Below, one piece after another: positions 1,624 to 62,000 of a DNA stretch of 64,000 nt. Position numbers and translations under genes: made by a program. Location of the stretch: assembly GCA_047495785.1 (NCBI GenBank), contig JBLDXI010000015.1, positions 1,612,001 to 1,676,000 on the forward strand. Direction: 5' to 3'. The notes beneath the pieces were generated by a model. It did no database searches. It was not told the DNA's origin and worked only from the letters and a program-made list of their open reading frames with translations. This DNA comes from Lepidodermella squamata (taxonomy: Eukaryota; Animalia; Gastrotricha). The stretch's first letter is position 1. Each line of letters starts with the position of its first letter.

Positions 1624-3877
1624 ATGAACAACAACAAAAATAACAACAACAGCCCGGATCAAGCGATACTAGATAGCGATTATTCGTCTTGCACGGTTGC
1701 GCTCTTCACGCTTGTTGGCCGCACTTTCATCCAAGCAGCCACCTTAATGTCCCTCGCAGTGCGGCGACGGCGCGGGTCGTGCGCCCGATTTATCATCAGC
1801 TCAGGCCTAGCTCTAGTCACATTTTACATCGCAATCGCAATTTTGCAACAAGACGGCAATTACAACTCAAATTTCACGTATCAATTAACACCCCAGGGCT
1901 TGTTTGCAATCAACCGTGACGGAGAGCGGAAACCAAATACCGTCAACTTGAACCAGCCTATTGAAATTTCATCACCGAATTGTACCGAGAAAGATGCTGA
2001 GCTATGTGTCTTCCGGAGGCAGTTGATCTCGGCCGAGGACAGGCAGTTATTACGGCTCACTTTTGAAAAATGCTCAAGTGTTCTTATGCAACTCCCGAAA
2101 GCGGCGTACTTCCTCTACGGAACTTCCTTAGTCGGTTATTACCGCCATAATTCATCAATGATTCCGTGAGTTTTTCCGTTCTTTCCCGATATTTCTCTGA
2201 ATTTTAACTATAGTTGGGATGATTTTATCAATATTGCGCTATTTTCTACTGATATCGAGTTCGATTTGGCTAAAACAGTGCGAACATTCCACCACCTGTT
2301 GAAAACTGCCCTACCGCCTGGGGAGTACGGCATGCGATACGACCGGGAGCAGCATATCATCAAATGCTACGGTCTATTGGCGAAAAATTCGCGCCGAATC
2401 GAAGATCCGGCCATTTTCTGGCGTTGGCCTTACATTGAGATTCAAATAATGAATGTAACTCGCAATTCGAGAGGAAAAATTACAACAATAGTGGACCCTA
2501 ACTGGTCTGATTTTTCGGTAATTTTTAAATTCAAAATTAAATTAAATTTCAATTTAGGTTACATTTTTAAAAGATTTACATTTTCAATTTAATTTTTTTT
2601 AATTTTGAAATTATGAAAAAATTACTTTAATTTAATTTAAATCTTAACAATTTGAAATTTTATTTTTAGTACCCTGCTGAAATCGTTTTGCCGTTGAAAT
2701 CTATCGTTTTCGAGGGCTCCCCATCCTATGTCCCAGGCGATCCTTTACTCGCCCTGGAGCGAAACTACAACCCTTACACATGCCGCTCCCAGTATTACAG
2801 CCATCGATTAGAAAAAAGCCTACATTCGTCCGAGATCGTCAGTAGGCCGTGCCAGGATCTGCGGCATTTCGTCAATTTTACAAATCTCGACTTTTACGAC
2901 GACTACAACTCGGGCACGCCGTCGTGCGAGATCGGCAAGCTGAAAGATGACCCGAATCTGTGCGCGTTTTTGCCGCTATTAACGCCTCAGGACAAGGCTA
3001 ATGTTCTCAGGCTGATGTCGGTTTGTGTTGAAATGCTGGAAAAACTTACCGAGGCTAGTTATTTCCTGTACGGTGGGACTTTGATCGGCTACTGGCGACA
3101 TAATGGCACGATGATACCTTGGGATGATGACGGTGAGTGTAAATTTTTTAGGCTTTAGAATATTATTTAAAATTAGTAGGAAAATTAATTTAAATTTTTA
3201 AATTTTGAATTATTTGAATTATAATTAAACTTGTTAATTTTAGTTGATCTTGCCATTGTTCGAAACAATCCTAATCGGAACGAGTCTTTCTACGTTGACC
3301 AGCTGAGGGAGTTGGTCACGGAATACCCGGGCTATGCAATTCACTACATGGAAGATCAAGGCAAGCTGAAATGCTTCGGCACGCTATCGAGTAATTCGCG
3401 TAAAATCGGCCACGGTGAAGATTTCGAATGGCGCTGGCCGTTTGTTGACATTCAACTCATGCGGACCGAATTTGAAGGCGAAAAAATCGCCAATATCAGC
3501 GATCAGTCGGGCTTTGACAATTATTGGGTTAGTAATTCGAAATATAACAATCGTCGAAATTTTTTAAATGTTTTAGTATCCTGGGGATTTAATTTTCCCA
3601 CTGCAACGGGCCACGTTTGAATCATTGCAAGTTTGGGTACCAATTAACATTCAGGCCGCCCTGGAGAGAAATTATGACATTGAGCAGTGCACAGCTCCTT
3701 ATTACAAGTAATTACTGATTTTTCCGCAATTTTTTGAATTTTTACGATTTTTTTGATCGCAGTCATCGATTTGAAAGAGCTGTGGCAGATGAGCGGCAAG
3801 TTTCGCGGCCGTGCGTTCAATTGACCTCGTTGTACACTTTTACAAACATCGACGATCCTTATTACGACGTGTCGTGA
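1624..3877 (+). CDS. Tandem two-domain LicD/fukutin-family protein 1 (type II membrane)
   Basis: Exons 1624 (or ATG 1747)-2165, 2214-2517, 2670-3132, 3244-3527, 3577-3707, 3763-3877, joined by GT-AG introns in frame. Basic patch plus hydrophobic anchor (RRRRGSCARFIISSGLALVTFYIAIAIL). Domain 1 YFLYGTSLVGYYRH..IPWDDFIN; domain 2 YFLYGGTLIGYWRH..IPWDDDVD...WRWPFVDI (LicD-type motif). Confidence 0.9.
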
Positions 3878-4246
3878 TGACCTGACCTACTTCTGCTGGT
3901 GTAAAATTCGGTGCCGCTTTTTATTTCTATATAATTAAACAAACTACTGCGCAATCGGGGTCATGATCATTATTTTAGGCTTTTTCTATCATAATTCGCA
4001 GCGATATCTTGTCATTCAATACTTGGTTTTAATGAGAATAAAAAGGACGCAATCAACGCTGAAAAATTGGTTGAAATGATTAAAAAAAATTCGGGTTTTA
4101 ATTGGGAGTGCGCCACTTTAATTCCGAGTAATAATTCAAAATGTTGCTGTGAAATCTCGGAATTTCCATATTTGATGCGATTTTCCTGGAAAATGTCTGT
4201 CGGACTTGATGTTCACAATGATAATTACAAATGCTTACAGCCTATC

Positions 4247-6386
4247 ATGCCGCAAACTTACCGAAGTCGGCGCAGATTTCGACCGGCGTTTATCATCAAG
4301 TTGAGCCTGATTTTCTGCTCAATTGTGTTGTTATCCTATTTATTCTCGCATTGCGATTTCGACTCATCGGAGGATTACTATCTGTTGAAGTTGAAATTTC
4401 AAAAATATCGCAACATTTCAGCTGAAGAGGTTGAGTATTACGGCGAGGATTGCAGCGAGTCTGATCGCGATTTGTGCATCTTTCGGCGGCAAATCGACGA
4501 CGTGAAAGATTTCAGGCCGATGATGGTGACAACTCTAGAAAATTGTTTGAAAGTTCTCAACATGCTACATGGAACTACACATTTTCTCTACGCGTCTACT
4601 TTGCTCGGATATTATCGGCATAATTCATCAATAGTTCCGTAAGCGAATTTTCTCAATTTTTACAAAATAATCAAAATTCATGAATATTTGTTTTATAAAT
4701 TAAAAAAAAATCAGAAATGTCAAAAAAATTATATTTTAGTTAGCTGATTTCTTTGATTTTTCAGGTGGGACGATAGCTTGAACATAGCTCTCTTGCCTAC
4801 TGGCCATCGGCTTGATACAGCCACAGTTGTTCGAAATTTTCATCGCCTAGTGAAAGAAAAATTCAATCAAGCCGAGAATCAATATTCGATGATTTATAAC
4901 AAAAACGCCAAAGTGATCCTATTTTTCGGCACCAGCCCTCGAAATTCGAAACTCATCGCCAACGGCAATATTCCTCATGTATATTGGCGCTGGCCTTACG
5001 TCGCCGTGCAACTGCTCGAGCCAACTCACGGCCGGCATAGAAAATTGGTTCAAATTACTCAATCGCGCTTCAACACGTCATTCAAAGTCGAGACAATTCT
5101 GCCTGTTCGACAGGTTGTTTTCGAAGGCGTCGAGGTTAACGTACCCCACGACGTTCAGGTCATGCTTGAGCGATTCACGAACCCTGGCCAGTGCCGCAGT
5201 TTGACATTTTCGGCCCGGAAGGGTCGTTTCATCGACAACAGCTTCGTCAAACTTAAGCCATGCTCGGCGTTGGGAAATTTTGTTAAATTCACGAATTTAA
5301 ATCTCGCCAAGCCGAGTGGCCAATTAACGGCCGCTAAGACGCCCCAGTGCCAGATTGGCATCGACCGTGACGACCCACAGTTGTGCCTGTATCTTCCGGT
5401 TCTGAGCCAGGAAGAAAAGTCGAGAATGTTGGAGCTGCTCAGGGTGACTGTTAAAATTCTGGAGAGAGTGAAAGAGTCGCAATATTTCATCTACGCTGGG
5501 ACTTTGATTGGCTACTGGCGGCATAATCAATCGATCATACCTTGGGACGACGATGGTTAGTCAGTAAATGAATTTTTTCTGATTTTTTCAAATTATTTCA
5601 GATTTTTCAGAATTATTCAAAATTTTGAAATTTTGAAATTTTGAAGTTTTGAATTTTGAATTTCTTTCGGATTTTCGGAATTTTATTAATTTTTTTAAAT
5701 TCTGAAAAAATTCATAAATATTGCTAAATTATTATTATTTAAATTATAGCCGATATTGCTTTGGTGCAAATGAATCCTGACCTTGGCGATAATTACTACC
5801 TGCGCCAAATCAAGCACCTCCTGACCGATTATCACGGCTACGACATGAACTACCGAGCTGATCAGCACAAGTTGAAAATATTCGCAGCTTCATCTTCAAA
5901 TTCACGGCGAATCAACCAAGAAACCTACGCGTATGAATACCGATGGCCTTACGTCGACGTTTTCTTCATGCAAAATGAATACTCAGACGCGAATTATGGG
6001 AAAATTGAGTCGATCACCGATCCAAGTGACTCAACATTCAAGGTACACTGACACCTCTTATTTTATCGAATTTATTTAATTTTAAATTTTAGTTCAAAGC
6101 CAGCTGGGTTTTCCCGATTCGATCAGCCATTTTCGAGTCGATCCCTGTGAAAGTGCCTCATCGCATTGAAAAATTTCTCAAGCACACGTATGACCTTCAC
6201 ATGTGCAAGGCCAGCTATTGGAGCCACCGCGACGAAGGCCCTATCGACTGGGACCGCCAAGCTTCGAGACCGTGTCGCCAGCTCGATTTTATGTACAACT
6301 TTACGAATTTGCAGGATAATGATTACTATCACTATGATGATGATGGAAAGAATAATTTGGCCGAATATAATGAAAATGATGATTGA
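4247..6386 (+). CDS. Tandem two-domain LicD/fukutin-family protein 2
   Basis: Exons 4247 (alt ATG 4193)-4638, 4765-5555, 5750-6042, 6093-6386. Anchor AFIIKLSLIFCSIVLLSYLF. Domain 1 IVPWDDSLN; domain 2 YAGTLIGYWRH..IIPWDDDAD...YRWPYVDV. Confidence 0.9.
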
Positions 6387-6590: not shown

Positions 6591-7510
6591 TTATCCGGAG
6601 CTTCCAGACCAATAGGGATAGCCAAAACCTCCGTTGCCGTTGCCGCTGGATAGAATAAAAACAAATGTTGCGATTTAAGATTTCGGACTAAACTAGCTTA
6701 CCATGGAGCGTAATTGCAGACCAGCATGGTTTTCAGGGTTCCGGCGTTAGCTAGGGCCGTGCACGTTGCACTTCCACATCCTATGTACAAGGTTGTATTC
6801 CAAACTACTTGCGTAAAATGTCCCACAACGGCAGTTGACGGACTTGCACCAGTTCCATAAACCTAAAAGGTGATTTTTTTATATTAAAACAAAATTAATT
6901 AAAATTGTGGAAAATTTCAAAAATATGCAAACAAATTATTTTTTTGTCATTTAAATGTTTTGAATATTCATTCGATTAAATAAAAATTAAATAAAATATT
7001 TTTTTAAAAATTTACCCAATTTTTATATTCTTCGTACCAACTGTCAATACCCGCAGACAAGTCTAAATAGGTCACGGAGGACGCGTAGATATTTTGCCCG
7101 ACACAATTACCCCACGTTGTATTAGCTGGGACCGTTCTTTGGGTACCGCTATCGTGGCTGAAATCACACTGAGCCGCTCGGCGGGCAGCAGTTAACGCCA
7201 GATCAGCATTCCAACTCAGCGATGGCAGAGACGGGCTAGCTGCCGGGGTGACATTAGCGCGATAGGTGTTATGCCGGCTGAGGGTGAGGTCAATAGAAAC
7301 AGGGTTGAAGTACAGAAAACGCGAGTTATTCGTCGAATTGCAAGAGCTGTGGTTGCCTGACGCGCCTGTAATGCAGCTATTGCCACTCGTGGCGTTCGGC
7401 TCCAGATTAGTCAGCGGGAAATCGGTGCCGGGATTTTTAGTCACCGAACTGCAAGCTTTGATGCCTCCGATAACAGCGATGATTAGTAAGGACAATGTGA
7501 AATGGATCAT
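6591..7510 (-). CDS. Secreted CAP/SCP (CRISP/PR-1/GLIPR-like) protein
   Basis: Exons 7510-7016, 6862-6702, 6645-6591. Signal peptide, HNTYRA, LSWN, CDFSH, GQNIY, CAP signature GHFTQVVW, VCNYAPCGN. Confidence 0.9.
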
Positions 7511-7922: not shown

Positions 7923-7996
7923 TGCCCCCTGTGAGGATCGAACTCACGACCTCCAGATTATGAGACTGGCGCTCTAGCCAACTGAGCCAAGGAGGC
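7923..7996 (-). tRNA. tRNA-Met(CAT), elongator type
   Basis: Reverse complement gives a cloverleaf GCCTCCT...GGGGGCA, anticodon loop CTCATAA, TTCG T-loop. Confidence 0.93.
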
Positions 7997-8082
7997 GCTT
8001 GTGGTCACCCTGGATCCTATTCTGACTTCGTAATTGAACATTGAACTATCTATTTATCAAAGCTGGGGAAAAATAGAAGCCG

Positions 8083-8154
8083 AGGCCCAGACGGGGATCG
8101 AACCCGCGACCTTCTGTTTACAAGACAGATGCTCTACCACTAAGCTACTGAGCC
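8083..8154 (-). tRNA. tRNA-Thr(TGT)
   Basis: Cloverleaf, anticodon arm TCTGT-CTTGTAA-ACAGA. Confidence 0.93.
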
Positions 8155-8222
8155 GGCTGATAGCTGAGCCCATCGTTGATTTTGGAAGAAGAGCCGGTGT
8201 GTTTATGATGACAAAAAATTGG

Positions 8223-8294
8223 CGACCCAGATGGGACTCGAACCCACAATCTCCGGCTCCGGAGGCCGACGCCTTACCATTAGGCCACTGGGCC
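8223..8294 (-). tRNA. tRNA-Arg(CCG)
   Basis: Cloverleaf, anticodon loop CTCCGGA. Confidence 0.93.
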
Positions 8295-8455
8295 GGCTTG
8301 AAACAGCAAATAGCGAAAGGCGTCCCGTTGAAGGTGAATTATTTCCAGATCCTCTGTTTGACAACAATTCATCTAATTATTTCTCCGCGAGTATAATGCA
8401 TGTGAAAGCAGCGAAATTGAATCACTATTTCGTTTGATACTGCAATGTTCACGAA

Positions 8456-8537
8456 GCTGCTATGCCCGAGTGGTTAAGGGGTCTGACTTGAAATCAGATG
8501 CGGTCTCCGCGCGTAGGTTCAAATCCTACTGGCAGCG
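8456..8537 (+). tRNA. tRNA-Ser(TGA)
   Basis: 82-nt cloverleaf with long variable arm, loop CTTGAAA, downstream T-run. Confidence 0.93.
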
Positions 8538-8838
8538 ATAACATTTTTGGATTTCGATGACGACGATTCATCCGTCAAATCCGATATATCAAGGTTACTC
8601 GGTACCGATACTCGGTTTTTAATTTCCAGTTCCCAAATGCTCTAAATTATTTTCCTGCATCTTCGACCGAAAAAATAAAAGGAACAATTCCGATGAATAA
8701 AAAAAACGTGTGAAATTGATAATGAAATGGCAGAGTCGGATTTATTTTCTGTGTTCAGCACATCTCTGTTACTAAAAACAAAACCAGTTCAAGCTTTACC
8801 TCAAAACTCAAAGAAATGCTTTCAAAATGAAAAAGGGA

Positions 8839-8912
8839 AGGTTCCGGCGGGGTTCGAACCCGCGACCTTCTGCGTGTAAAGCAGACGTGATGAACCACTA
8901 CACAACGGAACC
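8839..8912 (-). tRNA. tRNA-Val(TAC)
   Basis: Cloverleaf, arm TCTGC-TTTACAC-GCAGA. Confidence 0.93.
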
Positions 8913-8979
8913 TGTTGATACTGAGGATCAAATGCACAGCTTTGAAGATTCGTTAAATTTAGTTCTAGTTTCAAAAATT

Positions 8980-9051
8980 TGGAGATGCCGGGGTTTGAAC
9001 CCGGGACATCTTACATGCAAAGCAAGCGCTCTACCACTGAGCTACATCCCC
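8980..9051 (-). tRNA. tRNA-Ala(TGC)
   Basis: Cloverleaf, G3:U70, loop TTTGCAT. Confidence 0.93.
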
Positions 9052-9123
9052 ACATGATTTCAAGGGACCTAAATCCTCTTTAATGGCAATGGGACCTTTT
9101 TGAAGTTTGAAAAAGGTTCGGCG

Positions 9124-9196
9124 AGGTTCCGGCGGGGTTCGAACCCGCGACCTTCTCCGTGTGAAGGAGACGTGATAACCACTACACTACGGAACC
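9124..9196 (-). tRNA. tRNA-Val(CAC)
   Basis: Cloverleaf, arm TCTCC-TTCACAC-GGAGA. Confidence 0.93.
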
Positions 9197-9268
9197 TGGA
9201 TACTAAGTTCAGCTCCGGCGTCAAACACTCGTTTGAAACCTCGATCTTCTGCCAAGCGATAGCAAAAG

Positions 9269-9340
9269 TTCCCTGACCGGGAATCGAACCCGGGCCGCCG
9301 CGGTGAGAACGCGGAATCCTAACCACTAGACCATCAGGGA
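9269..9340 (-). tRNA. tRNA-Glu(CTC)
   Basis: TCCCTGA...TCAGGGAA, loop TTCTCAC. Confidence 0.93.
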
Positions 9341-9413
9341 GCATGAACATGGAATTTGATTAGAATGTGACCTTCGTTAGGAATTAGAATTCTAATTGTC
9401 AAAAAGTTGAAGC

Positions 9414-9487
9414 TGCCCCCTGTGAGGATCGAACTCACGACCTCCAGATTATGAGACTGGCGCTCTAGCCAACTGAGCCAAGGAGGC
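9414..9487 (-). tRNA. tRNA-Met(CAT)
   Basis: Identical to the 7923-7996 copy. Confidence 0.93.
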
Positions 9488-12444: not shown

Positions 12445-14254
12445 ATGCACGGCAGGCTGTCGAAGTATGAGCTTTCCTTTTATTTTTGCTACTGGGCGGC
12501 TCTCTTTGGAAAGATGGTCTATCACCTGTATCTCTTCTGCCGTGGTATGAATTATTGAACTGCATCAGACGTCTAGAGTTGCTACGAATTTCTTCATATT
12601 TTCAAGTCATAGAGCTGGATCATATATTTGCAAGCTGGGCACTGACTCCAGGATTCTTCATGAATTACAAATTTCGGGTTTGTTTTCAATTACTCTTTTA
12701 CCTATTATCCAATTTTTCCTTTGTTAGGAAAAGCTCGACGCTGAAATGTGGGTTTTGTTCGACCATGGTCTATCCTATCTAGCTCTTGGGCTTGGCCATG
12801 CCATCTTGCGTCACATCATTTTTAGGATTATAATTCGCCCGGAAGCAAAAAATCGTGACGAACTATTTCTGATCTTTTGTATTATCTACGGCGTATTGGC
12901 TACAAGTTATATAACCGGCCGCTACTACGGTGCTCTACATTTCCTGATTGCCGTGGCCGATTGGTTTATTGTTCGGAGGTTTTTCAAAATAACTCCGCTG
13001 ATCAGTAGAATTTCACCTCTTTGCCGAGCATGGATAATTGCCATCGCGCAAACGATATTGTTTCATCGGAGCACATCGTATTTGAATCCGTTTAAATATT
13101 CCGAGGCATCCCAAATCGCTTTCTTTTGGGCGATCGGGTGGCATCACTTGAAGTTTATCAGCTTCACTGATTCTAACTCGAAATTTCAAACTGGATTTCT
13201 TCATTACATGGCCTACATGTTTTACTATCCTCTAATTGTCGCACCTTTCTCACCATATTCTCGATTTCTGGTTCATAATGATTTGAAACATGCTGGCGAT
13301 ACCGAAAATTTCTCATCATTGAAGAAACCATTTGGCCAATCTGTGAAGGAGTTATTTAAAAAGCTTGTGATTGTATCGCTATGGCTGTTAGCTCTTATTT
13401 TCGGAAATCACGCCTTCTTCCCAACCGGCTTGGCTTTCTATCCAACAGCTTATCTTCAAGCTGACATATGGGCTCGAGCTGGCCATGCTTGGATGATGGG
13501 GCAATGGTTCCAGATTAAATACATGGTTATGTACGGAGTTCCTTGGATCGTCACTTTTTTGGATACGGGAGTGCCGTTACCCGAGTTGCCAATTTGCATC
13601 TCCAGAGTATACCGTTATTCTGTAATGTGGCGGAAATTTGACACTGGCCTGCACGAGTTCATGCGGGATCATTTATACGGGCCAACTTTAGCTACGATCG
13701 AATCAATAATTTCCTGGTCCAAAGGTCGGACCTTTTTCCATCGCAGCGTTATCTTCCGGAAAATGTTGGCCCTTGCAATTACATACAGCTTCATTGGAAT
13801 TTGGCACGGTTTAGGCAGTGGCAGCTTGGTTTTCGCAGCAATGAATTATATCTGCCTCGTTGTTGAATTCATGTCTGCTCGTATGAGCGGGCATTTTAAG
13901 TTAGCCGAGAAATTGGGTCCGCAATGGTATCGTCGATTTACAGCATTTTGCTGCTCATTCAGCGTGCAATGGTCCTGGATATCGTTTTTCTTTTTCAGTA
14001 AGTTCAGCGAAACTTTCGTGAAATTTACAGAGCTTTAATTCATAGAGACCGACTGGAGAACTGGCTGGTTTATCATAGAAAATTTGTTCTACCTCGAGTT
14101 ATGGAGGTATTCCATCGCCTTTTTTGCATTCTACTGTTGGGTCAACTTGTGCATGGAGCTTGAAATTCTGCTGGACCAACCAGAGGCCAAGCTGGCTATT
14201 GATAAGCCGCAATCAACATACGCTAAGCAACTTTCATCGAACAAGAATAAATGA
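12445..14254 (+). CDS. HHAT: MBOAT protein-cysteine N-palmitoyltransferase, HHAT/Rasp-like
   Basis: Exons 12445-12544, 12607-12677, 12728-13997, 14046-14254. Multi-TM; MBOAT motifs YMFYYPL, MWRKFDTGLHEFMRDHLY and catalytic FIGIWHG; N-terminus LSKYELSFYF resembles the HHAT start. Orthology not tested. Confidence 0.72.
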
Positions 14255-45859: not shown

Positions 45860-45931
45860 TCCCTGATGGTCTAGTGGTTAGGATTCCGCGCTTTCACCGC
45901 GGCGGCCCGGGTTCGATTCCCGGTCAGGGAA
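45860..45931 (+). tRNA. tRNA-Glu(TTC)
   Basis: Body identical to the Glu(CTC) copies but loop is CTTTCAC. Confidence 0.9.
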
Positions 45932-45994
45932 CGTTTTCTATGCTTGGATCCAGGTTTTTGCTGATTGTTTAGTGCCAGAGCTACTTGTCATCTA

Positions 45995-46067
45995 GGTTCC
46001 GTAGTGTAGTGGTTATCACGTCTCCTTCACACGGAGAAGGTCGCGAGTTCGAACCCCGCCGGAACCT
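45995..46067 (+). tRNA. tRNA-Val(CAC), T-stem mismatch variant
   Basis: gcgagttcg instead of gcgggttcg. Confidence 0.82.
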
Positions 46068-46133
46068 CGTCCAAAATTTTTCCAATTGTTCACCTCAGCT
46101 ATAAATGAATGTTAATGTCCTGTTAAACCATGT

Positions 46134-46205
46134 GGGGATGTAGCTCAGTGGTAGAGCGCTTGCTTTGCATGTAAGATGCCCCGGGTTCAAACCCCGGCAT
46201 CTCCA
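46134..46205 (+). tRNA. tRNA-Ala(TGC)
   Basis: Intact cloverleaf. Confidence 0.92.
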
Positions 46206-46398
46206 ATTTTTCACGCTGACTTTTCCACCCCGCTACCCCGTACATTTTCTAATGGATTTTTTAATAAAAATTCATATGAGGAAAATAATTCTCTCAGTTT
46301 ATTAAATAATGATTCCTTTAATTCTTTTGAAAAATAATTTGGCACAACATTATACGACGCGAAATCCTTGCAAAGACATCGAAGCTGTTCGAAGACCG

Positions 46399-46818: not shown

Positions 46819-48681
46819 AGCTTATTCTGTGTTTTGTATACACGCTGGAGGTTTAAATTCTCACATTTGCTCGTGTATTAATATATGTATTTAGAGTATA
46901 TTTGCGAGGGGTGTGTATAAGATGTGCGCTCCATGTTTGATCACCTGCTCGTACGAATTGGCACCAATAACGCCGCGACAGGAAACGCAGCCGAATATCG
47001 AGAAAGACAGTGATTAAGCAATTGTTCTTAAAAGCATTTAAAATCAAATCTCGTAAATATGAAAGATGCGCCTTACAACTATTGAACAAGAAAAGTCCAT
47101 TTTTCGGATATTTTTCATGTACTAAAGGCAAAAGGGATTAAAATGGGCTCTTCGTTTTTTGGCTTTCTAGAATTTTAAGATTTTTTAAGATAAAATCCTC
47201 TTTTAAAATATTCGCATCAGTTTCAATTGGGAAGGTTTAACGAAGAACGAACCAAATGAAGACCGAAAACTTGATTACAAATCGTTTTCCTATTTTTTTC
47301 ATTTTCACTATACCTATTATTTCGCCTGAAAAATGACGGATGGTGGCATTCCTCGTCTCTTTAAGGAATATCGCATTTCCGTAATGGAGACAGCACCTTT
47401 GAAGTTGCCTGGCAACCATAAACACCACGGTATACAAAATACATAGCAATATGGCTTCGTCACCGCTATCTTGTAACTCGCGATTCTTAACAATAGATCT
47501 TCAAGCAGCATGAGAAGCTTTGTCTCCGAGAAAACAATATAAATTGAGACATCATGTTCTTGCAATGAACCATGTACCAGAAAATGTGGGGCATAATTGT
47601 TCACTTTCAGACTGAAATTTCATTTAAGCGCCACAGGCTACCTTATAAATAATATAAAAATAACGCATTGTGTCCTTCTCATCAACAATGCGGTCTTACC
47701 ACTGGAAGTTGCACTGTAATATTCTTCTTCATAGGTAGCAATAGCGCAGCAAGAAATATGCATGTTAGGTTTCCTGATAAATCGGGATTCAATTACTGAA
47801 TAAGATTGCTTATTTTACGCGTGTTTCTGATAATTTCTAAACGCGTTAATTAGCGTAATACACACGCAAATAATTCATTCACGTGACATGATGATAGCTA
47901 TCATATTATTAAAGCTGCACCGTTACACCTATAGTAAGAAGGGCTACCAAAAAGTCTGCGATTTATTGCAGCCGACACACTGCACGCTATTAATTAATAG
48001 CCAAAGCCGCGCGCCGTTTTGTTTCTGCACGTGTGAGGTCACTGCAATATAATCGGCACATCGACAACGTGTGTTTTGATTATTGGTCTTATTCACTTGA
48101 GCAAATACTTTCAGCCTGTAATTTGTGGACAATGATGAGTCATTAACGGCGAATTGCTACCGGTGAAGCTACTGACATCCGCCATTATTTACTCGTCGAG
48201 CCAAATTTTCTACGCTCATTACTTTCTTTTGTAAATTTATTTCCGGGAATTCATTCGATATTTTTTATTAATATGTATAATAGCAATAGAATGAGGGCGA
48301 ATTATTTATGCCTGAGATTATTTTCGCTCGCCTGCCTCTCGCGTGAAAGTAATCGAATTTTCGAAATGAAGAGTGATTACTTTTACGCCAAGGTGGTTTC
48401 TCGCACTCGACGCGCACCTGAGGTGGTAACATAGCGCAACTTGTTATTGCGGCGCACTCTCGTCAGAACAAGATGCGCGCCGCTCTTCGCACAACAAACA
48501 CCGCGCTACAAAAACACCTCACTTGCGCGAGATAGGATTGCCTTAGGTTATGCTATTACACCTCCGGTATCCTTTTACTTATATTGACACCGCCGCTGCG
48601 CAAGGTAATGGGGTTCCACTCTGTATAACTGGGTCATCATCTTACCATTTTCAGTCTCGATTTATTTCACCGAATTTAGGT

Positions 48682-50641
48682 ATGAAATTATTGAGTAAAC
48701 GATATCAAAACTGGTTTAGTGTCCGGTATATCTGCTTATCTCTCACGTTGACCGTGCTCTTGTTACACCTGTTGTGGCCGTTTTTCTGCGCGTTTTGCGA
48801 CCGCGTTTTCGGGACATGCTTCAAGTGCAGCGTTTTTGAGCAGAAAATTCGAGAGGCGGACGGCCTGAGACCACGGCTGATCGGTCTCCTGTCCGCGTCC
48901 TTATTCACCCTGAACAGCTTACAGAATGCCGGCGAGTTGGCTTATTTTCTGTTTGGTGACACCCTCCTCGGTTATTATCGCCACAATTCAAAATTAATTC
49001 CGTAAGTATTTTTTTTTATTTATCAAAAAAATTATTTATGAAATTTAAAAGGTGGGATAATACTCTTCAGTTTGCTGTGGTTACCTTCAACCACGGGGCT
49101 GGCTTGTCCTCAGTTGCGAAGCAGATTTTGAATGTCTCGAAGAATACAACGCTCGGCCGTCTTTCATTTACCGTCGATTCAAAAGCCTGGACAATCACGT
49201 TTCAAGACCGCGATCTCAGCGTTCGAATTCAAGTCATGAGCTTTACTCCCGAAGAAACTCTCGTCGACATGAGCAGAAATATTTCGGTAAAATTCTGAAA
49301 AAATTTCGAAGTCTTAATTTTAAATTTTAATTAATTATCAAAAATCCAAATAATTATCAAACATTTTTAATATTAAATTTAAATTTTTCCGATTTTTTTA
49401 GTATCCCGCTGATCTTATTTTGCCGCTAAAACAAGTAACTTTCGAGCAACACTTCAGCACCTATATCCCGAACGACGTCATCGGAACAATCGAGCGTGGT
49501 AAAGTTAATCCTTACATCTGCCGGATAGATCAGGGCGGCTCGAAATCCTCAATACCTTGCCGTAAATTGCGCCATCTAATTGGAAATCTCACCAATCTGC
49601 CACTTATCGAAGACCGGCAACTTTGCCCAGCGCACAGTCAATTTTTGAAAAGTGACCCTGAAATGTGCGCGTTTTTGCCGCAAATTACTGGCAAAGAGCG
49701 CCGGTCTATGGTGGATTTACTCGCGGTCTGCATTGATGTCCTTGATCAGATGAACAGATCGGATTCTAAATATTTCCTATATTCTGGGTCGCTACTCGGC
49801 TATTGGCGCCATAATGGCTCTATGATACCGTGGGACGACGATGGTATGTCATGAAAAATTGAAAAATTAAAATTAAATTCGAAAAATTTTGACATATTTA
49901 TTAATATTTTTTTTTAATTAGTTTCATGATTTAATTTAATTTAATATAATATTTTAATATTTTTATTAAATCGGTATTTTTATTTTATAGCCGATATTGC
50001 ATTTTTGCCGACCAATCGAACCCGGTCGTTCGAGTCCTATGTCGATGAGATGAATTCGATGTTAGCTAAACGCCACCCCAGTGGCTACCAAATGCTGTAC
50101 GTCCCGGAGTCGAAACGCGTCAAATGTTTCGGAACTCGAAGCGACAACTCGGTTTTGGTCGGGCAAGGCGATGAAGAATACCCGTGGCGGTGGCCATTTG
50201 TCGATATTGATTTTCTAACGGCCCGATATTCTTGGTCGTTGAGCTCCGGCGATAAGCCGAAAATTGCGAAAATCAGCCAGGCGCATGGATATCATGAATT
50301 TAGGGTTCGTTGAAATTTTCAATAAAAAAATTTAAATTTAATTTTTTTTGAACATTTTTCCAGTACCCAGCTTCTATTGTTCTGCCGCTTAAACGTGCCT
50401 ATTTTGAGTCGATTTCAGTCAATGTACCACATGATGTCGAATCAGTCTTGAAACGAACATATGATCTCGATCAATGCGTTGGGACATCTTACAAGTAGGC
50501 TGAGAATAACTTCAAATATTTTGTCTAATTTTCCTTAATTTTTCCAGTCATCGATTTGAACAATCCTTTCAGAAACTTAACGTGAAGAAACCTTGCCGAG
50601 AAGTTGCGGAGGCTCACGGATACTATCTTACGAACATCTGA
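48682..50641 (+). CDS. Tandem two-domain LicD/fukutin-family protein 4 (shortened N-domain)
   Basis: Exons 48682-49001, 49052-49286, 49402-49843, 49991-50304, 50364-50494, 50548-50641. Domain 1 YFLFGDTLLGYYRH..IPWDNTLQ; domain 2 YSGSLLGYWRH..IPWDDDAD...WRWPFVDI. Confidence 0.88.
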
Positions 50642-53316: not shown

Positions 53317-56300
53317 ATGGTCTTACTAAGAATTGATGGCAACGATTACGGCAGGAAACGGTGTTTAATTTTTGCTTGTCTCGTTTTTCTGCTAATCGCC
53401 GGCAATAGCATCTACTCGCTGATTTACGTCGGCGAGCTCTTCTCAACTAACCACCTGCTCAAATTTATACTCAACCAAAACGACTCGACATGGCTTGCTA
53501 GGTCGAAGCTGATCAGCCAGCGGTATTCGGCTGTTTTCGCGGAGTTATCGAAACTTGACCTAGTTCTGGACACATCGCCGCCGATCAAGAGTCAACAGGA
53601 TGAAATTGATCGGTTATGGAATTCCGCGGCGGTTAGGCATGCGCGATTTTCGAAACTACTCACCCCGGCTCGGATATCGGCTTTCACGAATTATAACCGA
53701 TTTTTCGGCATCGACAACGCAAATTTAACGCAGCCTGATTATTACTACTGTGGCGCTGATGGCGACGAGACAAATTTTCGCAACCTTGACGCCGATAAGG
53801 CTAGGCATTATTTTGAAATGTGTGTTTTCAAACGGCAGTCGTTGGCCGGCGAGCAGAGGAGAAAATTGGCGGATTTGTTGGCGAAATGTACGGCAGTGTT
53901 GAGCCGGTTCGATGCAGCTGGCTACTTTTTGTACGGAAATTCGTTGTTGGGGCATTATCGGCACAACCATTCCATGATTCCGTGAGTTATTCTGTTTTCC
54001 TTTCTCGTTTTAAAAAATTTAAAATCAACGAGCATTTCCCGAATCTGGGGTAATTTTCAAGATTTTCTGTTTTAAGAACTTCAACGCTGCTAATACTTTC
54101 CAACTAAAAAAAGAAATTGGCTGAAATGTCCCATAAGTTGCGCAACAGTTTGATATTTTACAATTGTTTTAGGAATTTAAACTAATTTTTAGTTTCCACT
54201 GGGGGAATCTTCCACTATTTCTATTTATCCACGATTTTACCGAGGAAATTAAAAATTCGCCGGAGAGAACCCTGAAAGCCCCGATTGTAACTGTATCGAA
54301 TAAATGTAATAACTGTAATTTTCGGGTTTTACCCGGCTGTACCAAATTTCTCCGGACTTTTTTTAATCCAATTCACAAGAGACATACTTGATTATTACTA
54401 TTCTTTTATGGCATTTTAGAAATTTCTAAGATTTTTCTTGCCATGATGTATGACTTCCCATCTCATTGCAGTTTCTGATCGCTTTTCCGTGTATTTCCTT
54501 TGTTACTTATGGGACACTCTGTAGATAAGTTTTTCACAGAAATACGTGGTTTTTTTTGGAAGAAGTTCATTCATTCATTCATTCATTTGGGAAGAAGTTG
54601 AAATATTCGATAACTTGAAGCACGGAAATTGAGTGACAAAGCGAATTAACACTCGCCAAAATTACACCAAACAGAACCTTGACTTTCGAAACTAAGTTCC
54701 AGTTGAAGTTGACGGAATTTTGTTACACTGCAATTTTTGTAGGAATATATTATTGTCTTGAAATCCAATTTTTACTTATATCTCTGTCACTCGCGAGGCT
54801 CTCGCTCAAGCGAATTTTTGGGTGGACTGGATGAGTGTGACGATGTGCGCGAAATTGTAGCCGATTTACGATGGTCCGGTGCCGCCTAAAGAGTGAAGGC
54901 TAGTTAGGGCGAACGTATCTTTATATCGCTCGCTCACCCCTACTTGTCAAAAACAGTGATTCATCAACCTCGCTAGAAATTCTTGCCCGAAAATGACTCC
55001 TTTTCGAATATTGCTCTTTGGTTGTTGGGCCTCGGTCTTGCGTTTCTTCGGCGGAGGAGCGACTTCTTCATCAGATCCACTTGAGATGGTGATACCTGGT
55101 AGATTCTGTCGAGCCGGCGTTGACGTAGTAACGCCGCCAGGGCCGGGTGAGAGCTCCATTGTGTGAACAAGAGGGTACCAAACCTTCCGTCCCACGTTCC
55201 AGTGACCTTCAACTTCTTTGCTCGGAATAGTAATTATTTGAAATGCGCGGCTCTTTCACCAGTTGTTTTTTCTGTGACCCGCGCGGCTAGAGCTAACTTG
55301 GTTTTCTCAGCTCCTTCTAAGCTAAGTAAGACGTGATCCGGAGGCGCATCAGGTTTTTGAAACTATGAAACTACCCTTTTTATCCCGCAAATAGAGGAGT
55401 AGCCGAAAAATCCCTGCTTCGTAGGGTATAGTCGATGGAAAATCGATATCAAACGCCCAGGGTGATCAGAAATGAGATATTAGTTGCACATGATCATGGA
55501 AAATTGATGATCAATCTATGTAACAAATGATGACCCTTCAGAAATTTTTGGAAAATCGCAAGTGATGTCTAGAGTCTCCATAAATAATAAAAGCTTTTAA
55601 TCGATAGTAAATTTTATTTCATCGATTCAGCTTTAGCCTAAATAACAGTTCTGGGACCGGTATTCCATTTGAAACTTCAAATAGTTGCGCAAGGGTAATG
55701 GAAGGTAAGGTTTAAGTCCTTCGTCGATTGCCGTCATTCGACTCGCGTAACCTATCGGTAAGCTGTTGAGCACAGCCATGCGAGCCATGAATTGCAATCG
55801 CATGGGAAAGACAATGTGAGCAGAAGATCTCGCCAGTTCATTTATTTCCTGGCTCTCATGACTCTCAAACTCCTCGTATGATGAGTCGCGCTTTGTCGAA
55901 AGTAAAAGATCGATAAAGTCGACCTCATAGTCGTAAATCGGAAGACGATTCGCGGCAGTTGCTAGCCTAGCTATTGCGACCAGTTGGTAATACGAGTGAG
56001 ACGTTCTGCAACCTGCTAGGACCATTGACTTGATAAAAGTGACCACTCTTGAGTCGTCTTCGCCCTCGGGAATCGCACTGATTCTACTCGAAACCAAGTC
56101 AAGAGGTGATTCCAAATAACCGGACCTCGCAGCTTCTTCTGATAGACGCGCGAGGCATTCCGTTTTAGGGCTAATGACTAGCCAAGATGCCATATCGAGC
56201 TCGCCAGCATGAACCATCCACGTCAAAGTGTGATCACCCCCATGTTTGACGAGCTGTTCACTGTTTTCGAGGTCTAACAGCTTCATTATGAGATCTTGTT

Positions 56301-59300
56301 TTCCTTCGACGCAGGCGTACGTCAAAATTGTGTAGCAAGTGTCCCTTTCAATTTCCAGCAAATTAGCTCCATTTTTGATCAGCGTCATCAATGCATTGTC
56401 GCTGCAGGATGAGCGAAATGCCCGGCATAAGGAGCCAATAACGCCGAGTTCGATCAGCTCCTCTGCAAAGATTGCGTTATGATCGGCGAATGCTTTGTTC
56501 AAATACGACTCTAGGAATTCGGTCTTCAATAGCCCGGGATCGATTCTCAATATTCTGCTGAGTTTGGAGTAGCTTAAGTTGACATGTCCATACTGCAAGT
56601 TACGTAGAACTCTTCTGATACCACAGCGTCTTACCGGGCGAGGGAACCGAAAGTAGTGATGGCTGAGTTCATGGTCGGTTTCGCATTTTTCGAAAATAGC
56701 TAGAAACCTGCTGGTTTGGCGATGATCTTCATTCTGATCTTCCTTCGCTTCGACAGTCGTAAAATCAAAATCAAAATCCATGTGTAAGCTTAAATATTTG
56801 CGCTATAAGTGATAACATACGAAGAGTGGAGCTGTGGTAGGTATTAGGGCGTGTATATACCTATTTGTTTAATACTGACGCAATACGTAATAAGGCATGG
56901 CATGATTCATCCCGTATGAAAACATCAGTGCGCATGATTCATCATATTGATTACTTGGTGCGTTGGTAAAAAAGGCTTAGGAATATCTAAATTATGCGTT
57001 TGAGAATAGAAAGTAATAGCTGTAAGCTGTGAAGCGAATTTAGAAATTGTAGTTTAATGGTTTAGTTTAATAGAACATCTATTAATTTATGTTCTATGTA
57101 TATGCGAACTCTAAAGGTTGCGCCAGTGTTTAACGGGATTTACAATCAATAAATCATTCATTATTTGACTGAAGAAAAGTAACAGCAAACTCACTGGAGC
57201 TGAACCTTATCTATCAATTCTTTTATAGGTGGGAAGATGGCATTACTCTGGCAGTTTTTTCAATCGATTCTATTTTCGACTACGCTCCCGAGATGTTGGC
57301 GCGGTCTCTCCTCAGTTTCATTAATAAGTCAAACAGCCGTAGGAACTCAACGTTATCGATTTCTTACAACCCTAAACGCTTTACGATTATACTGTTCGAA
57401 GCCGAATCCGCCAAAGCTTCGCTGGATTCTTCATATGGTTCAATAAATGCAAGCAATCATAGCAGTCTAACTGAGAACCCTCAATGGCCATACATCGAGA
57501 TTCAAATTCTCAACGTGACTCGCAATGTGGACGGCTCTATTTCTGGATTTGTCGACCCCAATCGGCCTGATACTTCCATACCGGCTGATTATATTTTGCC
57601 TTTGAAAAGAAGTCATTTCGAGCAAGATGCGGTAAGCATACCGAACGACAGCCTCGGCCTTATCGAGTTGACCTACGGCAATCCCTACGTGTGCTGGTCA
57701 CGTTCGTATGAATATCGTGAAAATCGCGCCCTAGTTCAATTCTCATTGCCATGCCATCAACTGCGACCCTATGTCATTCCCGCTTTTACCAACTTGCCAT
57801 TTTTCCAAGACGAAAAGCCATGCAACCTCTCTGAAATTCTGGTCAATGTTCAGAATCTAACGGCTGGGGATCCGAATCTTTGTGCATTTTCATCCGCTTT
57901 CACGCCACAAGAAAAGGCGAGTTTCGTGACAACCTTGGCAATTTGTTTGGAGATTATTGAGCAGCTAACTGACGCGGCTTATTTCTTGTATGGTGGCACA
58001 CTGATTGGCTACTGGCGGCATAATGGCACGATTATTCCATGGGATGATGACGGTAAGTTGTTCTTTTATGTATTCGATTTCAAACTACGTTATGTGGTTT
58101 TAATCAATGGAAAATACAGACAGGGAAAAAGACTATTAAGACCACATTTTACGAGAAAAAAAAGCTTTTTTCGTTGAGGTCAGATAGTACCGATTACAAT
58201 GCTCCATATTTCATATTTCAACAAGAATAAGTTTTAAAAGGGTGCTAATGCTTAATCACCAGTGTCTGCAGCTTATCAGCCCAGACAGGGTAGAAAATGA
58301 TTGCGAAACTGCTGAATGAGTAAGCGATTTCCAGGCACGCCAGTGTAAGCAACTGATGCATCCACTTGTTGACTACTGCCATTAGAAAGAATCCCCCTCC
58401 AAATATTGTTGCGGCATTTAAGACTGCAATCCTTACGGTGGAGACATCTAGACGAAACATTGCTTGCGTGACAAGTATTTTGGTTTCGAAAAGCCGAGCA
58501 GTAGAGATCACTAGCAATATCAGATTGAATCCAGCGAACCCTGCGGACCATGCTGGTAGGTCTTTGGCGTAGCATCTCTCTGACGTATTCACGAAGTAGG
58601 TGTCAAGTTCGTAATCAAAGGAAATTGCGCTAGTTTCTTTCGCTTTTGTAATCGGATCAGAAACTAAGAGCCAGATTAAGAGAAGGATAGTGCACATGAT
58701 TGTACTGCTACCAACTACCCTTGTCTCATTGATTGCCATGCGCTTTGAGGTTTGCAAATTATTGGAGGGTTTTCTGCCTTTAGTAAAGTGCCGATGAAAT
58801 TTCGACCTGATAGATCCCGTTTCTCTCCGCCGCTGCTCCGTTAAGCTCACTAGTGTTAACGATCTAAAGCATAGTACACTGTTTATAACAGAAAATCCCA
58901 TCACTGGAAGAATTGCTATCCAAGAGCATTCATTTATCGGTCGAATTTGGACAAGTACGGCTATATCGAGGGTGATGCATCCAAATGCTATGAAAAGACC
59001 TCCAGGGAAGTCGAAAAATACAGCGAAATATGGGGTCTTTGATTCGCAAACGAAGATACCGCACGCTTTAACGACGACGCCAATTTTAACAATCACTAGG
59101 ACTGCAGTGATACAAGAGAGGATTATTATGACCTCTGATGGCATCTGTAAGCTGACGATTTCGATTTGGGACAAATCATTCGGCGGTAATCCCGATCCAG
59201 TGGCCCAGAGTGGCGATATGGGAAAATCCCAAAAGGGCTCAATCGCAAAATTTGATAAATTCAAGCTCCCGTGATCCGGATCTTTAATGAAAACGTTAAA

Positions 59301-62000
59301 AATATGAAGGATTGTTCTGTTGACGAGCTGCGATATGGATTGATTTTCGCTGTCAACCTCCAGTCTAGGCGAGAAATTGATGCGACTCGCTCGGACCGTT
59401 GAGATGTTCAATTTAGCTGCAGATTGATGCAAAACTTGGAATACCAACTCAGGTTTACTGCGGTAGTCAGCTAATGATAAGTTATAGTGATTTCTTAGTT
59501 TGTAATCTGTCGTGTTTAGCGTGAAGATAGCAGCCATCATTACATCTTGACAGAAGAGCCTGACGCCATAGTCTGCAACTTCTTTACCGGGCCTACCAAC
59601 AGCTGTACTAAGGCGATCTTCAAATTCGGAAACATTGTATCCTAGACTGCTTTTTCCGCTAAAAACATTTGCATATACTTTTGTTAGTCCGATCCAAAAT
59701 GTTGCTCGCATTTGTGGTTCAATCATGTCGTAGTTCGAGCACTCAGCAGGCAGTCGTGAATTGCTAGTTAGAGCGCAGCTGTAAAGTGCCACGAACAAGT
59801 AATGAGGAGGCGTGGCACCAGTTTTGTCTGGCACCATAAACGGCGGCAGAATGTTAATTGCATGGTCGCGATGAAATAAATTCTCGCATCGCCCGACTTT
59901 ATTTCGTCAAGATAGTCCGTAGTGGTGAAATCAACCGATACAACTGTTGTAACTACCTTTATGCCGCTATCGCTCGCAATTTCAACGAAATATTTTGCAA
60001 GACTATAATCCTCAAGACGCGTCGAAGTTATCACTCCAACTTGTCGCCATTTTCCTATCTCAGTCATGAATTTGATCGCTGCGTAAATGACATTTTCCAT
60101 GGGTATTTGAGGTCGGAAAAGGGCTGCACGGGTGTTCCGTTGAGTTAAAAAATTGATAGCTCCACAACCATAGGAAAAATGTATCGATTTGTAAAATTTG
60201 AACAATAAGGATGAAAACTGGCAATTGACCTGCTGGCCCACAAAAACCGGAGCTAGAAAGGTTTTGCCGTCGGAGTAAGATCGATCAGACTCCATAACGT
60301 TGATTACGCTTGGAATAACGCCAATTCCATCGACTGCTTCGTCCTCAGGCTGGATTTCGAGTTGGTAGTCAGGCAGAATGTCAGGCCTTCGGTTCGCTTC
60401 GTCTACTGCGATGCGATAAGACGCCAGACAAATAGTGCCGTTTGTTTGCTGTATGTAGTTGTTTAGTGAGATGAAGCTAGGTATCCTGAGAACGTTTGCT
60501 CTGTTTGCAAAAAGTGGCTCAATTGTTAGACTAGCGGCGACTATCATTTTAAGAATGTTCATCATCTTGCTGAACTAAGCCGTGTGAGCAACGCGTAAGT
60601 CATCAGTTGTTGTCGACTGTTTCACGCTGGCTAATTTAGTAATCTTCTCGATGCCAACCTTTTTCAAGTGTTAGAAAGCAACGTCGGTTGCAACTCTAAT
60701 TAGCATTGACCTCTCCCACACAACTTTGAACAACACATTCGAATCATGACGACGAGGTCGTTCGACCAGTTAGGAATTATCCATCCTGTACTCGCACGTG
60801 AAAGATTGTCTATTTAGACAGCTAATTTGCTAGTTCAAGACAAGTCTAGACACTAGACAAGAGTTCTACCTGCTTTATGACTTGCTGTAAAAGCGCAATA
60901 ATAGCTACTTTAGATTAAACTTTTCTTGTTGAAGTACCTGTGTAAAATTACGGTCAAGCGGCCAGAGTGATTTCAATAGATCGTTCGTATCGTGAATAAA
61001 GTTCCCAAGTGACATTTCTTCGGAAATCGTTAGTCTCCTGAGTCGATGTGCATCGAAATTTCATTGTGAATTAAATACGGGTAGAATTAACGCCGGAATC
61101 TATCTAAAATTGAGTGAATTTATTAAATTAGAGTTGAGAAACCAGATCAATTTAGAATAAACACTTTTTTTCGTATCCTGGAAAAATATGAAAAATTCAC
61201 TTGGCACCTTTATTCGCGATACCAACGAGATATCAACCCGCTAGTCGTAATCACGTCTACCTCATTCGAATAAGATCGCTTGTGACTGCGAAACCCGATA
61301 ACTTCCTATCACCCACTTTGATTTATACCTGGTTCTTACCTATAATTAACACTAATTTTGGTTTTTGCTGCAGCTGATATCGCCTTAATTCCAATGAATC
61401 CATCTCGTGGTCCATCGTATTATGCCAATCAGATGGAGAAGTTGACGAAGCGTTACCCCGGCTACGCGATACACTACGTTGCCGACCAAATGCGCTTCAA
61501 GTTTTTCGGAACTCGAACGCACAACTCACGGGTCATCGGCCAGGGTGACTACTCCTATGCATGGCGGTGGCCTTTTGTTGACGTACAGATCATGAAAAGT
61601 GTGTTCACGACCAAACGCAAAATCAAGGAAATAGCCGATGCAAGTGGCTACGTTTCTTTCAAATACCCTGCCTCTATGGTGTTTCCGCTTCGACGAGTCT
61701 CTTTCGAGTCGATACCTACCTACGTGCCAGCGAATACCAAAGCTGCCGTCGAGCAAAACTACGACATTCGAGTGTGCAAAGCTGCTTATTATAAGTGAGT
61801 TAAAGAAATATGATTGTTCGGTTAAAATGCTGACAATTTTCGAGAAATTCTTCGGAATATAGTCAATGTGTATGGTTTAGGTAACTTTTATTCATTTTTG
61901 CAGCCATCGTTTCGAGGAACGAGTTCCGGTGGAGAAACAAGTGACCAAGCCGTGCAGCGAAATAGCCAGAAAGCTCGGATATGTGATGACCAATATTTAG
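53317..62000 (+). CDS. Tandem two-domain LicD/fukutin-family protein 5 (host of nested genes)
   Basis: Exons 53317-53981, 57229-58052, 61374-61794, 61904-62000 splice in frame at the same positions as the paralogs: MIP|WEDGIT and IIPWDDD|ADIAL. Confidence 0.85.
54121..54523. mobile_element. Tc1/mariner-like MITE remnant
   Basis: Right end acttatgggacactctg+TA; degenerate left match tgtcccataagt. Confidence 0.45.
55633..56781 (-). CDS. Ankyrin repeat and SOCS-box (ASB-like) protein, intronless, nested
   Basis: 382 aa; ankyrin-like LIKNGAN...TILTYACVEGKQDLIMKLL; C-terminal SOCS box PMRLQFMARMAV...LPLPLRNYL. Confidence 0.8.
   Translation of the reverse strand: MDFDFDFTTVEAKEDQNEDHRQTSRFLAIFEKCETDHELSHHYFRFPRPVRRCGIRRVLRNLQYGHVNLSYSKLSRILRIDPGLLKTEFLESYLNKAFADHNAIFAEELIELGVIGSLCRAFRSSCSDNALMTLIKNGANLLEIERDTCYTILTYACVEGKQDLIMKLLDLENSEQLVKHGGDHTLTWMVHAGELDMASWLVISPKTECLARLSEEAARSGYLESPLDLVSSRISAIPEGEDDSRVVTFIKSMVLAGCRTSHSYYQLVAIARLATAANRLPIYDYEVDFIDLLLSTKRDSSYEEFESHESQEINELARSSAHIVFPMRLQFMARMAVLNSLPIGYASRMTAIDEGLKPYLPLPLRNYLKFQMEYRSQNCYLG
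58245..60565 (-). pseudogene. GABA-B-like class C GPCR, intronless, one frameshift, nested
   Basis: Signal peptide; Venus-flytrap motif IAVDEANRRPDILPDYQL; IKSGDARI..CRRLWCQ continues as KTGATPPHYLF in another frame near 59827; C-terminal 7TM; no Cys-rich linker. Confidence 0.8.

Follow-up and report, generated by a model that had tools for sequence, protein, structure and literature searches.

Five tandem LicD-domain genes in the gastrotrich Lepidodermella squamata pair a catalytically degenerate N-terminal domain with an intact C-terminal domain

A 64,000-nucleotide stretch of the Lepidodermella squamata genome (contig JBLDXI010000015.1, positions 1,612,001 to 1,676,000 of the forward strand; hereafter the window) carries five genes, g1 to g5, each of which encodes an N-terminal anchor followed by two LicD-type domains, here called the N-domain and the C-domain. 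The window is eukaryotic in character, with about 42% G+C and short, AT-rich GT..AG introns. LicD-like sites were sought by a six-frame scan for PW[DE][DN] and G[YW][YW]R[HN] as well as among stop-to-stop open reading frames (ORFs), and the scan of the window gave ten such motif sites on the plus strand and, at 63.7 kb, an additional orphan copy. Gene models were built by hand by enumerating the in-frame GT..AG junctions between neighboring ORF segments, the choice among them being guided by alignment of the paralogs. This yielded five spliced models, all on the plus strand and all stop-free, with 4-6 exons, products of 555-668 amino acids and GT..AG at each junction. Introns measured 48-194 nucleotides, except for two in g5 of 3247 and 3321 nucleotides. 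The genes and their parts are as follows.

1624-3877, plus strand: g1, 612 amino acids; exons 1624-2165, 2214-2517, 2670-3132, 3244-3527, 3577-3707 and 3763-3877
1789-1845: g1 anchor
1999-2906: g1 N-domain; motif PWDDFIN spans the intron at 2166-2213; WPYIEIQ at 2425-2445
2952-3874: g1 C-domain; motif PWDDD|VD spans the intron at 3133-3243; WPFVDIQ at 3435-3455
About 4076-6386, plus strand: g2, about 646 amino acids; four exons, to 4638, 4765-5555, 5750-6042 and 6093-6386
4289-4345: g2 anchor
4472-5329: g2 N-domain; motif PWDDSLN; WPYVAVQ at 4991-5011
5375-6383: g2 C-domain; motif PWDDDAD; WPYVDVF at 5944-5964
19145-21312, plus strand: g3, 654 amino acids; exons 19145-20083, 20134-20585, 20635-20965, 21018-21148 and 21201-21312
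19316-19372: g3 anchor
19604-20373: g3 N-domain; motif PWDDFID contiguous at 19769-19789; WPYVEIQ at 19988-20008
20419-21309: g3 C-domain; motif P|WDDDVD spans the intron at 20586-20634; WPYVDLQ at 20855-20875
48550-50641, plus strand: g4, 555 amino acids; exons 48550-49001, 49052-49286, 49402-49843, 49991-50304, 50364-50494 and 50548-50641
48730-48786: g4 anchor
48835-49617: g4 N-domain; motif PWDNTLQ; LSVRIQV at 49215-49235
49663-50638: g4 C-domain; motif PWDDDAD; WPFVDID at 50191-50211
53317-62000, plus strand: g5, 668 amino acids; exons 53317-53981, 57229-58052, 61374-61794 and 61904-62000
53368-53424: g5 anchor
53815-57826: g5 N-domain; motif PWEDGIT spans intron 1; WPYIEIQ at 57485-57505
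57872-61997: g5 C-domain; motif PWDDDAD spans intron 2; WPFVDVQ at 61568-61588
63704-64000, plus strand: orphan fragment, a partial copy covering the last part of g5 exon 2 and the beginning of the intron after it

The start codon of g2 is uncertain, the first ATG lying at 4076 with further in-frame ATGs at 4175, 4193 and 4247, and g4 has an alternative ATG at 48682. The orphan fragment is about 70% identical to 57978-58278, reads ...FLYGGTLIGYWRHNGTIIPWDDDD and directly adjoins the tRNA-Met gene of a tRNA cassette; no exons upstream of it were found in the window, and it is probably a pseudogene fragment left by segmental duplication.

Each of the five proteins has one N-terminal hydrophobic segment preceded by Arg/Lys and no second one, a predicted type II signal-anchor as judged from its sequence. 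The Pfam LicD model (PF04991) matched both halves above its gathering score of 22.6 bits, with 26.5 bits for an N-half (g3 exon 1) and 31.5-45.2 bits for the C-halves. In g2, exon 2 matched this model in two stretches, where one domain ends and where the following one begins, and an internal repeat of about 250 amino acids was visible when the ten domains of the window were aligned. The two domains belong to one gene, since single ORFs bridge them in g2 (exon 2, 263 amino acids, running from the N-domain through the linker into the C-domain) and in g5 (exon 2, 274 amino acids), and likewise in two genes, r1 and r2, of a distant relative described below (range over the four genes, 263-376 amino acids). 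In addition, the C-domains have no anchor of their own. A Pfam search with E values up to 1 found no match to FKTN_N (PF19737) or FKRP_N (PF22921) in the N-terminal exons of g1, g3 and g5, and in the cluster atlas these two domains occurred only in separate clusters; g1 to g5 are, thus, not orthologs of FKRP or fukutin.

After splicing, the N-domain motifs of g1 to g5 read PWDDFIN, PWDDSLN, PWDDFID, PWDNTLQ and PWEDGIT, with third acidic sites YIEI, YVAV, YVEI, SVRI and YIEI. The C-domains all read PWDDDVD or PWDDDAD, with third sites FVDI, YVDV, YVDL, FVDI and FVDV. The glycine motifs divide in the same way, being GTS, AST, GTS, GDT and GNS in the N-domains and GGT, AGT, GGT, SGS and GGT in the C-domains. 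An intron interrupts four of the five N-domain motifs and all five C-domain motifs, only that of the g3 N-domain being contiguous, and so the raw ORF track hides them. An earlier note on this DNA, made from the letters and their ORFs, had proposed precisely this: an anchor and two LicD domains in all five genes, motifs concealed by introns, and an N-domain that is catalytically dead. The spliced models, the single anchors and the Pfam LicD scan that the note had suggested, in which both halves scored, bear out the architecture; every N, C, third-site and glycine motif it quoted is present once the exons are joined (the limits it gave, 1624 and 62000, are the g1 ATG and the g5 stop), and the splitting of the motifs holds with the one exception in g3.

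The loss of catalytic residues was then mapped against an alignment of about 110 family members collected by an exhaustive HMMER search, in which 19 positions are 96-100% conserved. All eight C-domains (five from the window and three from the relative) keep 19 of 19 positions, including hG[GS], DxDxD and the third Asp. Essentially all eight N-domains keep the structural positions L52, G54, R57, H58, P64, W65, three Pro and two Cys. Lost from the N-domains are G50 of hG[GS] in 8/8, D68 in 8/8 and D70 in 7/8, the exception being the N-domain of g3, which keeps the equivalent of FKRP Asp364. Position D140 is Glu in four (g1, g3, g5 and r1) and lost in four, the third acid being gone in g2, g4 and r3. 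When aligned to the FKRP chain by phmmer, D66, D68 and D70 correspond to Asp360, Asp362 and Asp364. In FKRP, Asp362, Asp364 and Asp416 hold a two-metal site in which Asp362 binds both metals, and mutagenesis showed that Asp360, Asp362, Asp364 and Asp416 are each needed for activity (PMC6965139). The Asp362 equivalent in the eight N-domains reads F, S, F, T, G, F, T and T, while that of Asp360 is acidic in 7/8 and the adjacent second Asp is present in 6/8. By the criteria of the family, the N-domain is predicted to be unable to carry out the canonical reaction and the C-domain to be capable of it, and the deadness claimed by the earlier note is thereby placed on the Asp362, Asp364 and Asp416 equivalents and on hG[GS].

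The fold of the N-domain was modeled on the orthologous domain of the relative's r1 (P0159:56-335, with the same motif PWDDFIN as g1), because the window encodes none of its N-domains in one unbroken piece. AlphaFold2 (AF2) run with a 119-row alignment returned a model with a mean predicted local distance difference test (pLDDT) score of 90.2 and a predicted template modeling (pTM) score of 0.81. The 13 best PDB matches to this model were all FKRP chains, the top one with an E value of 1.7e-8, a probability of 1.0 and a template modeling (TM) score of 0.51, followed by other proteins of the nucleotidyltransferase (NTase) fold; among the AFDB clusters the best matches were LicD/FKTN/FKRP proteins with TM scores of 0.6-0.66. 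The confidence of the model and these matches indicate that the N-domain, as modeled, is a folded LicD-type NTase domain and not a disordered remnant. The fold of the C-domain was assigned by sequence, through Pfam LicD and a phmmer match to FKRP with an E value of 0.004.

Close relatives proved scarce. Among 1.84 billion representative proteins only two, P0001 (E 8e-46) and P0002 (E 2e-25), were close, and both are encoded on ENA metagenome contigs from a eukaryote that is compact and poor in introns; the window's own proteins have no entry in the protein collections searched. Three gene models from this relative, r1, r2 and r3, each comprise an anchor, a dead N-domain (PWDDFIN, PWDDTVH and PWQKTMQ) and a live C-domain (PWDDD[VIA]D). 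They are distant from the window genes, at 28-46% identity by tblastn. All tblastn matches listed for the relative's ORFs against the window were LicD genes, namely g1 to g5 and the exon fragment at 63.7 kb, and no synteny with the window was found for the relative's contigs, on which the neighbors are Forkhead, HAD hydrolase and dUTPase genes. A word-indexed search with P0001 for annotated tandem homologs (up to 639 amino acids) gave only metagenomic relatives and one unrelated LicD-cytidylyltransferase fusion. Between two of the relative's contigs from different samples, L001 and L002 (99.3% identical; r2 at L002 10001-11741), the start of the r2 C-domain has nine synonymous sites within codons 327-361, a tight run that may reflect gene conversion.

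Intron positions and phases are common to the paralogs and to the second species. The N and C halves also have introns in common (I^PW in phase 2 and ^YP in phase 0), which indicates that the internal duplication was a genomic event that included introns. An IQ-TREE phylogeny of 16 tandem domains and 18 single-domain relatives placed the N- and C-domains together, apart from the single-domain proteins of mollusc, brachiopod and nemertean type (support 99/100), and gathered the N-domains in one clade (99/96); the subgroups {r1, r2} and {g4, g5, r3} recur in both halves. Given this single N-domain clade and the recurring subgroups, one duplication and one inactivation predate both the radiation of the paralogs and the split of the two species.

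We also examined how the N-domain has evolved. Synonymous sites are saturated across the paralogs (proportion of synonymous differences, pS, 0.66-0.93), and therefore the classical ratio of non-synonymous to synonymous rates (omega) is unusable across them, so that the raw proportion of non-synonymous differences (pN) against pS and the r1-r2 pair are the informative measures. The pN was 0.32-0.56 in the N-domains, for which pS was 0.66-0.90, and 0.29-0.47 in the C-domains. For r1-r2, the least saturated pair, omega after a Jukes-Cantor correction by hand was about 0.26 in the N-domain and 0.23 in the C-domain. The evolution of the N-domain is not neutral, and it is kept under purifying selection. 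It is the more variable half, with pairwise identities of 23-41% as against 38-54% for the C-domains, and its terminal branch is longer than that of the C-domain in every gene. Over the genes, N and C terminal branches rank alike (Spearman rho about 0.9, by hand from the tree), which suggests a coupled fate for both halves. With its fold kept, its catalytic residues lost and its evolution non-neutral, the N-domain fits the sequence definition of a pseudoenzyme domain. The view of the earlier note that this domain is a conserved module and the more variable half agrees with these data, as the module recurs in the distant relative and its copies group in a single clade of the domain tree; the modeled N-domain had FKRP as its best PDB match, and the neutral evolution that it named as speaking against its view was not seen, pN being well below the saturated pS.

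FKRP, a ribitol-5-phosphate transferase (PDB 6KAM and related), is the closest known point of comparison. It is likewise type II, and its C-terminal LicD-type NTase catalytic domain has hG[GS], DxDxD and a third Asp. The stem at its N terminus, GT-A-like but catalytically dead, binds the acceptor phosphate in trans, and the active dimer depends on it. However, whereas the dead partner in FKRP has a GT-A-like fold, the dead partner in g1 to g5 is a second LicD fold derived from internal duplication; a zinc-finger loop is not evident in g1 to g5, and only about 45 residues around the motif are similar in sequence (phmmer E 0.004-0.03). The nearest named proteins are uncharacterized 'LicD/FKTN/FKRP nucleotidyltransferase domain-containing' proteins of Littorina saxatilis (KAK7100954), Lingula anatina (XP_013386528) and Tubulanus polymorphus (XP_074647956), which have an anchor, a stem and one active-type LicD domain. 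Although these spiralian proteins carry the same PWDDDxD, WxWP[FY]xD, H.xE and PC..L motifs as the tandem genes, they have one domain only, and the tandem clade stands apart from them with the support given above.

Bacterial LicD phosphocholine transferases (LicD1/LicD2, Mycoplasma fermentans mf1), like g1 to g5, are members of the Pfam LicD family; they modify glycoconjugates with cytidine diphosphate (CDP)-choline or CDP-ethanolamine as donors (PMC11982090). Bacterial tandems also occur: P0029, P0122, P0134 and P0140 have two LicD domains per chain, but both carry PWDDDxD and so look active, there is no signal-anchor, and the proteins are only distant kin of g1 to g5. Two intact LicD domains were found in P0059, a metagenomic or Logan sequence, and three in P0024 (ENA metagenome). 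The latter is the sister of P0132 (ENA metagenome, 556 amino acids, eukaryote-like), in which an anchor is followed by a first domain of degenerate motif (PYDRYIS, third site N) and a second whose motif is intact (PYDPDMD). P0132 lies in another, fukutin-like LicD subfamily of IPYDxDMD type and not in the clade of g1 to g5; given this placement and its intact three-domain sister, its dead and live tandem is of independent origin. The atlas clusters near the query were all single-domain, and no literature was found that describes tandem or duplicated LicD domains or a LicD pseudoenzyme, so that prior characterization, which the earlier note had recognized as a threat to its proposal, did not come to light. 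Its phrase 'undescribed system' nevertheless overstates the case, since this is an architecture of a known family, bacteria and other eukaryotes have tandem LicD proteins as well, and P0132 too is dead plus live. What is new here is a lineage-restricted pairing of dead and live domains, ancient and conserved, within an enzyme family already known; the system as such is not of a new kind.

On balance we think it probable, if by no means assured, that g1 to g5 form a lineage-restricted type II (Golgi-type) family in which a live C-domain transferase is joined to a dead, selected, accessory N-domain that arose by internal duplication. Under this reading, a spiralian-type single-domain LicD/FKTN/FKRP gene would have given rise to the tandem family through one internal, intron-containing duplication. 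The C-domain, which keeps the equivalents of FKRP Gly345, Asp360, Asp362, Asp364 and Asp416, would be the active enzyme and would move a phospho-alcohol from a CDP-activated donor to a lumenal glycan, acting as a putative lumenal CDP-alcohol:glycan phosphotransferase like LicD or fukutin/FKRP. Candidate groups are phosphocholine, phosphoethanolamine, ribitol-phosphate or glycerol-phosphate. The N-domain, which retains the FKRP-like nucleotidyltransferase fold and has lost the two-metal site, is a pseudoenzyme domain and would serve as a cis-acting accessory module that may position or recognize the acceptor, hold the catalytic domain in an oligomer, or both.

Several observations weigh against this reading. 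That the N-domain acts as an accessory or binds the acceptor is proposed by analogy, and the splicing of the models is inferred from GT-AG sites and from paralog and ortholog alignment. The g4 N-domain is the most degenerate of the five, and N-domain decay is strongest in g4, g5 and r3 (a deletion of about 29 amino acids in g4, and a branch length of 3.2 for the r3 N-domain), which is as compatible with an undemanding spacer as with a specific binder. Finally, the r2 N-domain has six non-synonymous differences to one synonymous between L001 and L002, counts that are too few for a test and that hint at relaxed or diversifying selection there.

The alternative that survives best, possible in our view although doubtful, is that the N-domain is a mere stem or spacer, a decayed duplicate that keeps the catalytic domain off the membrane or is needed for folding and has no role in ligand binding or specificity. 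Its faster evolution and longer terminal branches would be expected of such a part, as would the N-domains of g4 and r3, where the loss extends to the WRWPY region or to almost all of the DxD segment, and the polymorphism in r2; moreover, the single-domain relatives P0006, P0019 and P0036 have long low-complexity stems at the same place. Yet a spacer does not readily account for the retention, in essentially all eight N-domains, of the family-invariant non-catalytic residues L52, G54, R57, H58, P64, W65 and both Cys, or for an r1-r2 omega near the C-domain value, and the confident, compact AF2 model describes a fully folded domain beyond what a spacer needs.

A more specific proposal, which we regard as unlikely, is that the dead N-domain has been re-used as a cis glycan- or nucleotide-recognition module whose rapid divergence among paralogs sets acceptor specificity, the family being a combinatorial toolkit. 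If true, this would be a toolkit for decorating invertebrate glycans with phosphodiesters of the phosphocholine, phosphoethanolamine or ribitol-phosphate type, and the N-domain would be the first LicD-fold pseudoenzyme with a defined function. The suggestions of the earlier note that this domain may set glycan specificity, act allosterically or form an intramolecular pseudo-dimer gained no support from the present data.

It is improbable that the N-domain is not dead at all and retains a non-canonical activity, or a regulatory nucleotide or metal site, through its WDD and third-site Glu. The acidic Asp360 equivalent and its neighboring Asp persist in most N-domains, Glu stands for the third Asp in four of them and the Asp364 equivalent is kept in that of g3, and a review describes catalytic residues that have migrated in some pseudoenzymes (PMC10211241). 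These remnants do not, however, include the residue that binds both metals in FKRP, where each of the four Asp is required (PMC6965139), as the Asp362 equivalent and the glycine of hG[GS] are gone in all eight and the third acid as well in g2, g4 and r3. Hardly credible is the idea that the models are artifacts, with the halves being separate genes or the loci pseudogenes: the two long introns of g5 with their opposite-strand ORFs and the orphan exon fragment might suggest it, but the five models are stop-free over 4-6 exons with GT..AG at each junction, single ORFs bridge both domains in four genes, no C-domain has its own anchor, the paralogs and a second species share intron positions and phases, and pN is well below the saturated pS.

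The fusion of dead and live LicD domains is a clean natural experiment that could show how LicD-fold enzymes recognize their acceptors, and it parallels the dependence of FKRP on its dead GT-like stem. A 2025 paper stated that 'very little is known' on phosphodiester transfer to glycans and reported what it called the first in-vitro characterization of a phosphorylcholine transferase, a bacterial member of the LicD family (PMC11982090). For animal glycans, the enzymes that attach phosphocholine, phosphoethanolamine and similar phosphodiesters are largely unknown, and expanded LicD families of spiralian-type invertebrates are obvious candidates for them. The value of the present family is limited by its narrow distribution, namely this genome and one metagenomic relative.

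Unrelated genes lie between the five LicD genes. That they form a functional cluster with these neighbors was considered and rejected, the tRNA cassettes and the CAP, MBOAT, EGF and MAM genes having no evident link to them. The other features of the window are the following.

7004-7510, minus strand: ORF with a CAP/CRISP domain
7923-9487, minus strand: tRNA cassette
12746-14038, plus strand: single-exon, 430-amino-acid ORF of the MBOAT family
16034-16672, plus strand: ORF with weak, sub-threshold EGF-like matches
23826-35507, plus strand: long run of MAM-domain ORFs
29886-31692: tRNA cassette
38183-38400: tRNA cassette
45573-46206, plus strand: tRNA cassette
55633-56781, minus strand: 382-amino-acid ORF within g5 intron 1
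58245-60565, minus strand: ORFs of 530 and 265 amino acids within g5 intron 2
62742-63678: tRNA cassette

The 265-amino-acid ORF in g5 intron 2 matched an ANF_receptor ligand-binding domain (E 1e-10), and the ORF in intron 1 gave only a faint ankyrin match. A single cassette (Met-Glu-Val-Ala-Val ... Ser ... Arg-Thr-Met), repeated in five full or partial copies that lie in either orientation, accounts for 27 tRNA genes in the window; the flanks are 95-97% identical between copies, and the blocks are scattered between the LicD genes. The MBOAT-family ORF has a sole database relative, which is metagenomic and 42% identical. The MAM run contains at least nine MAM matches and appears to represent a giant gene, or several, for multi-MAM extracellular proteins.

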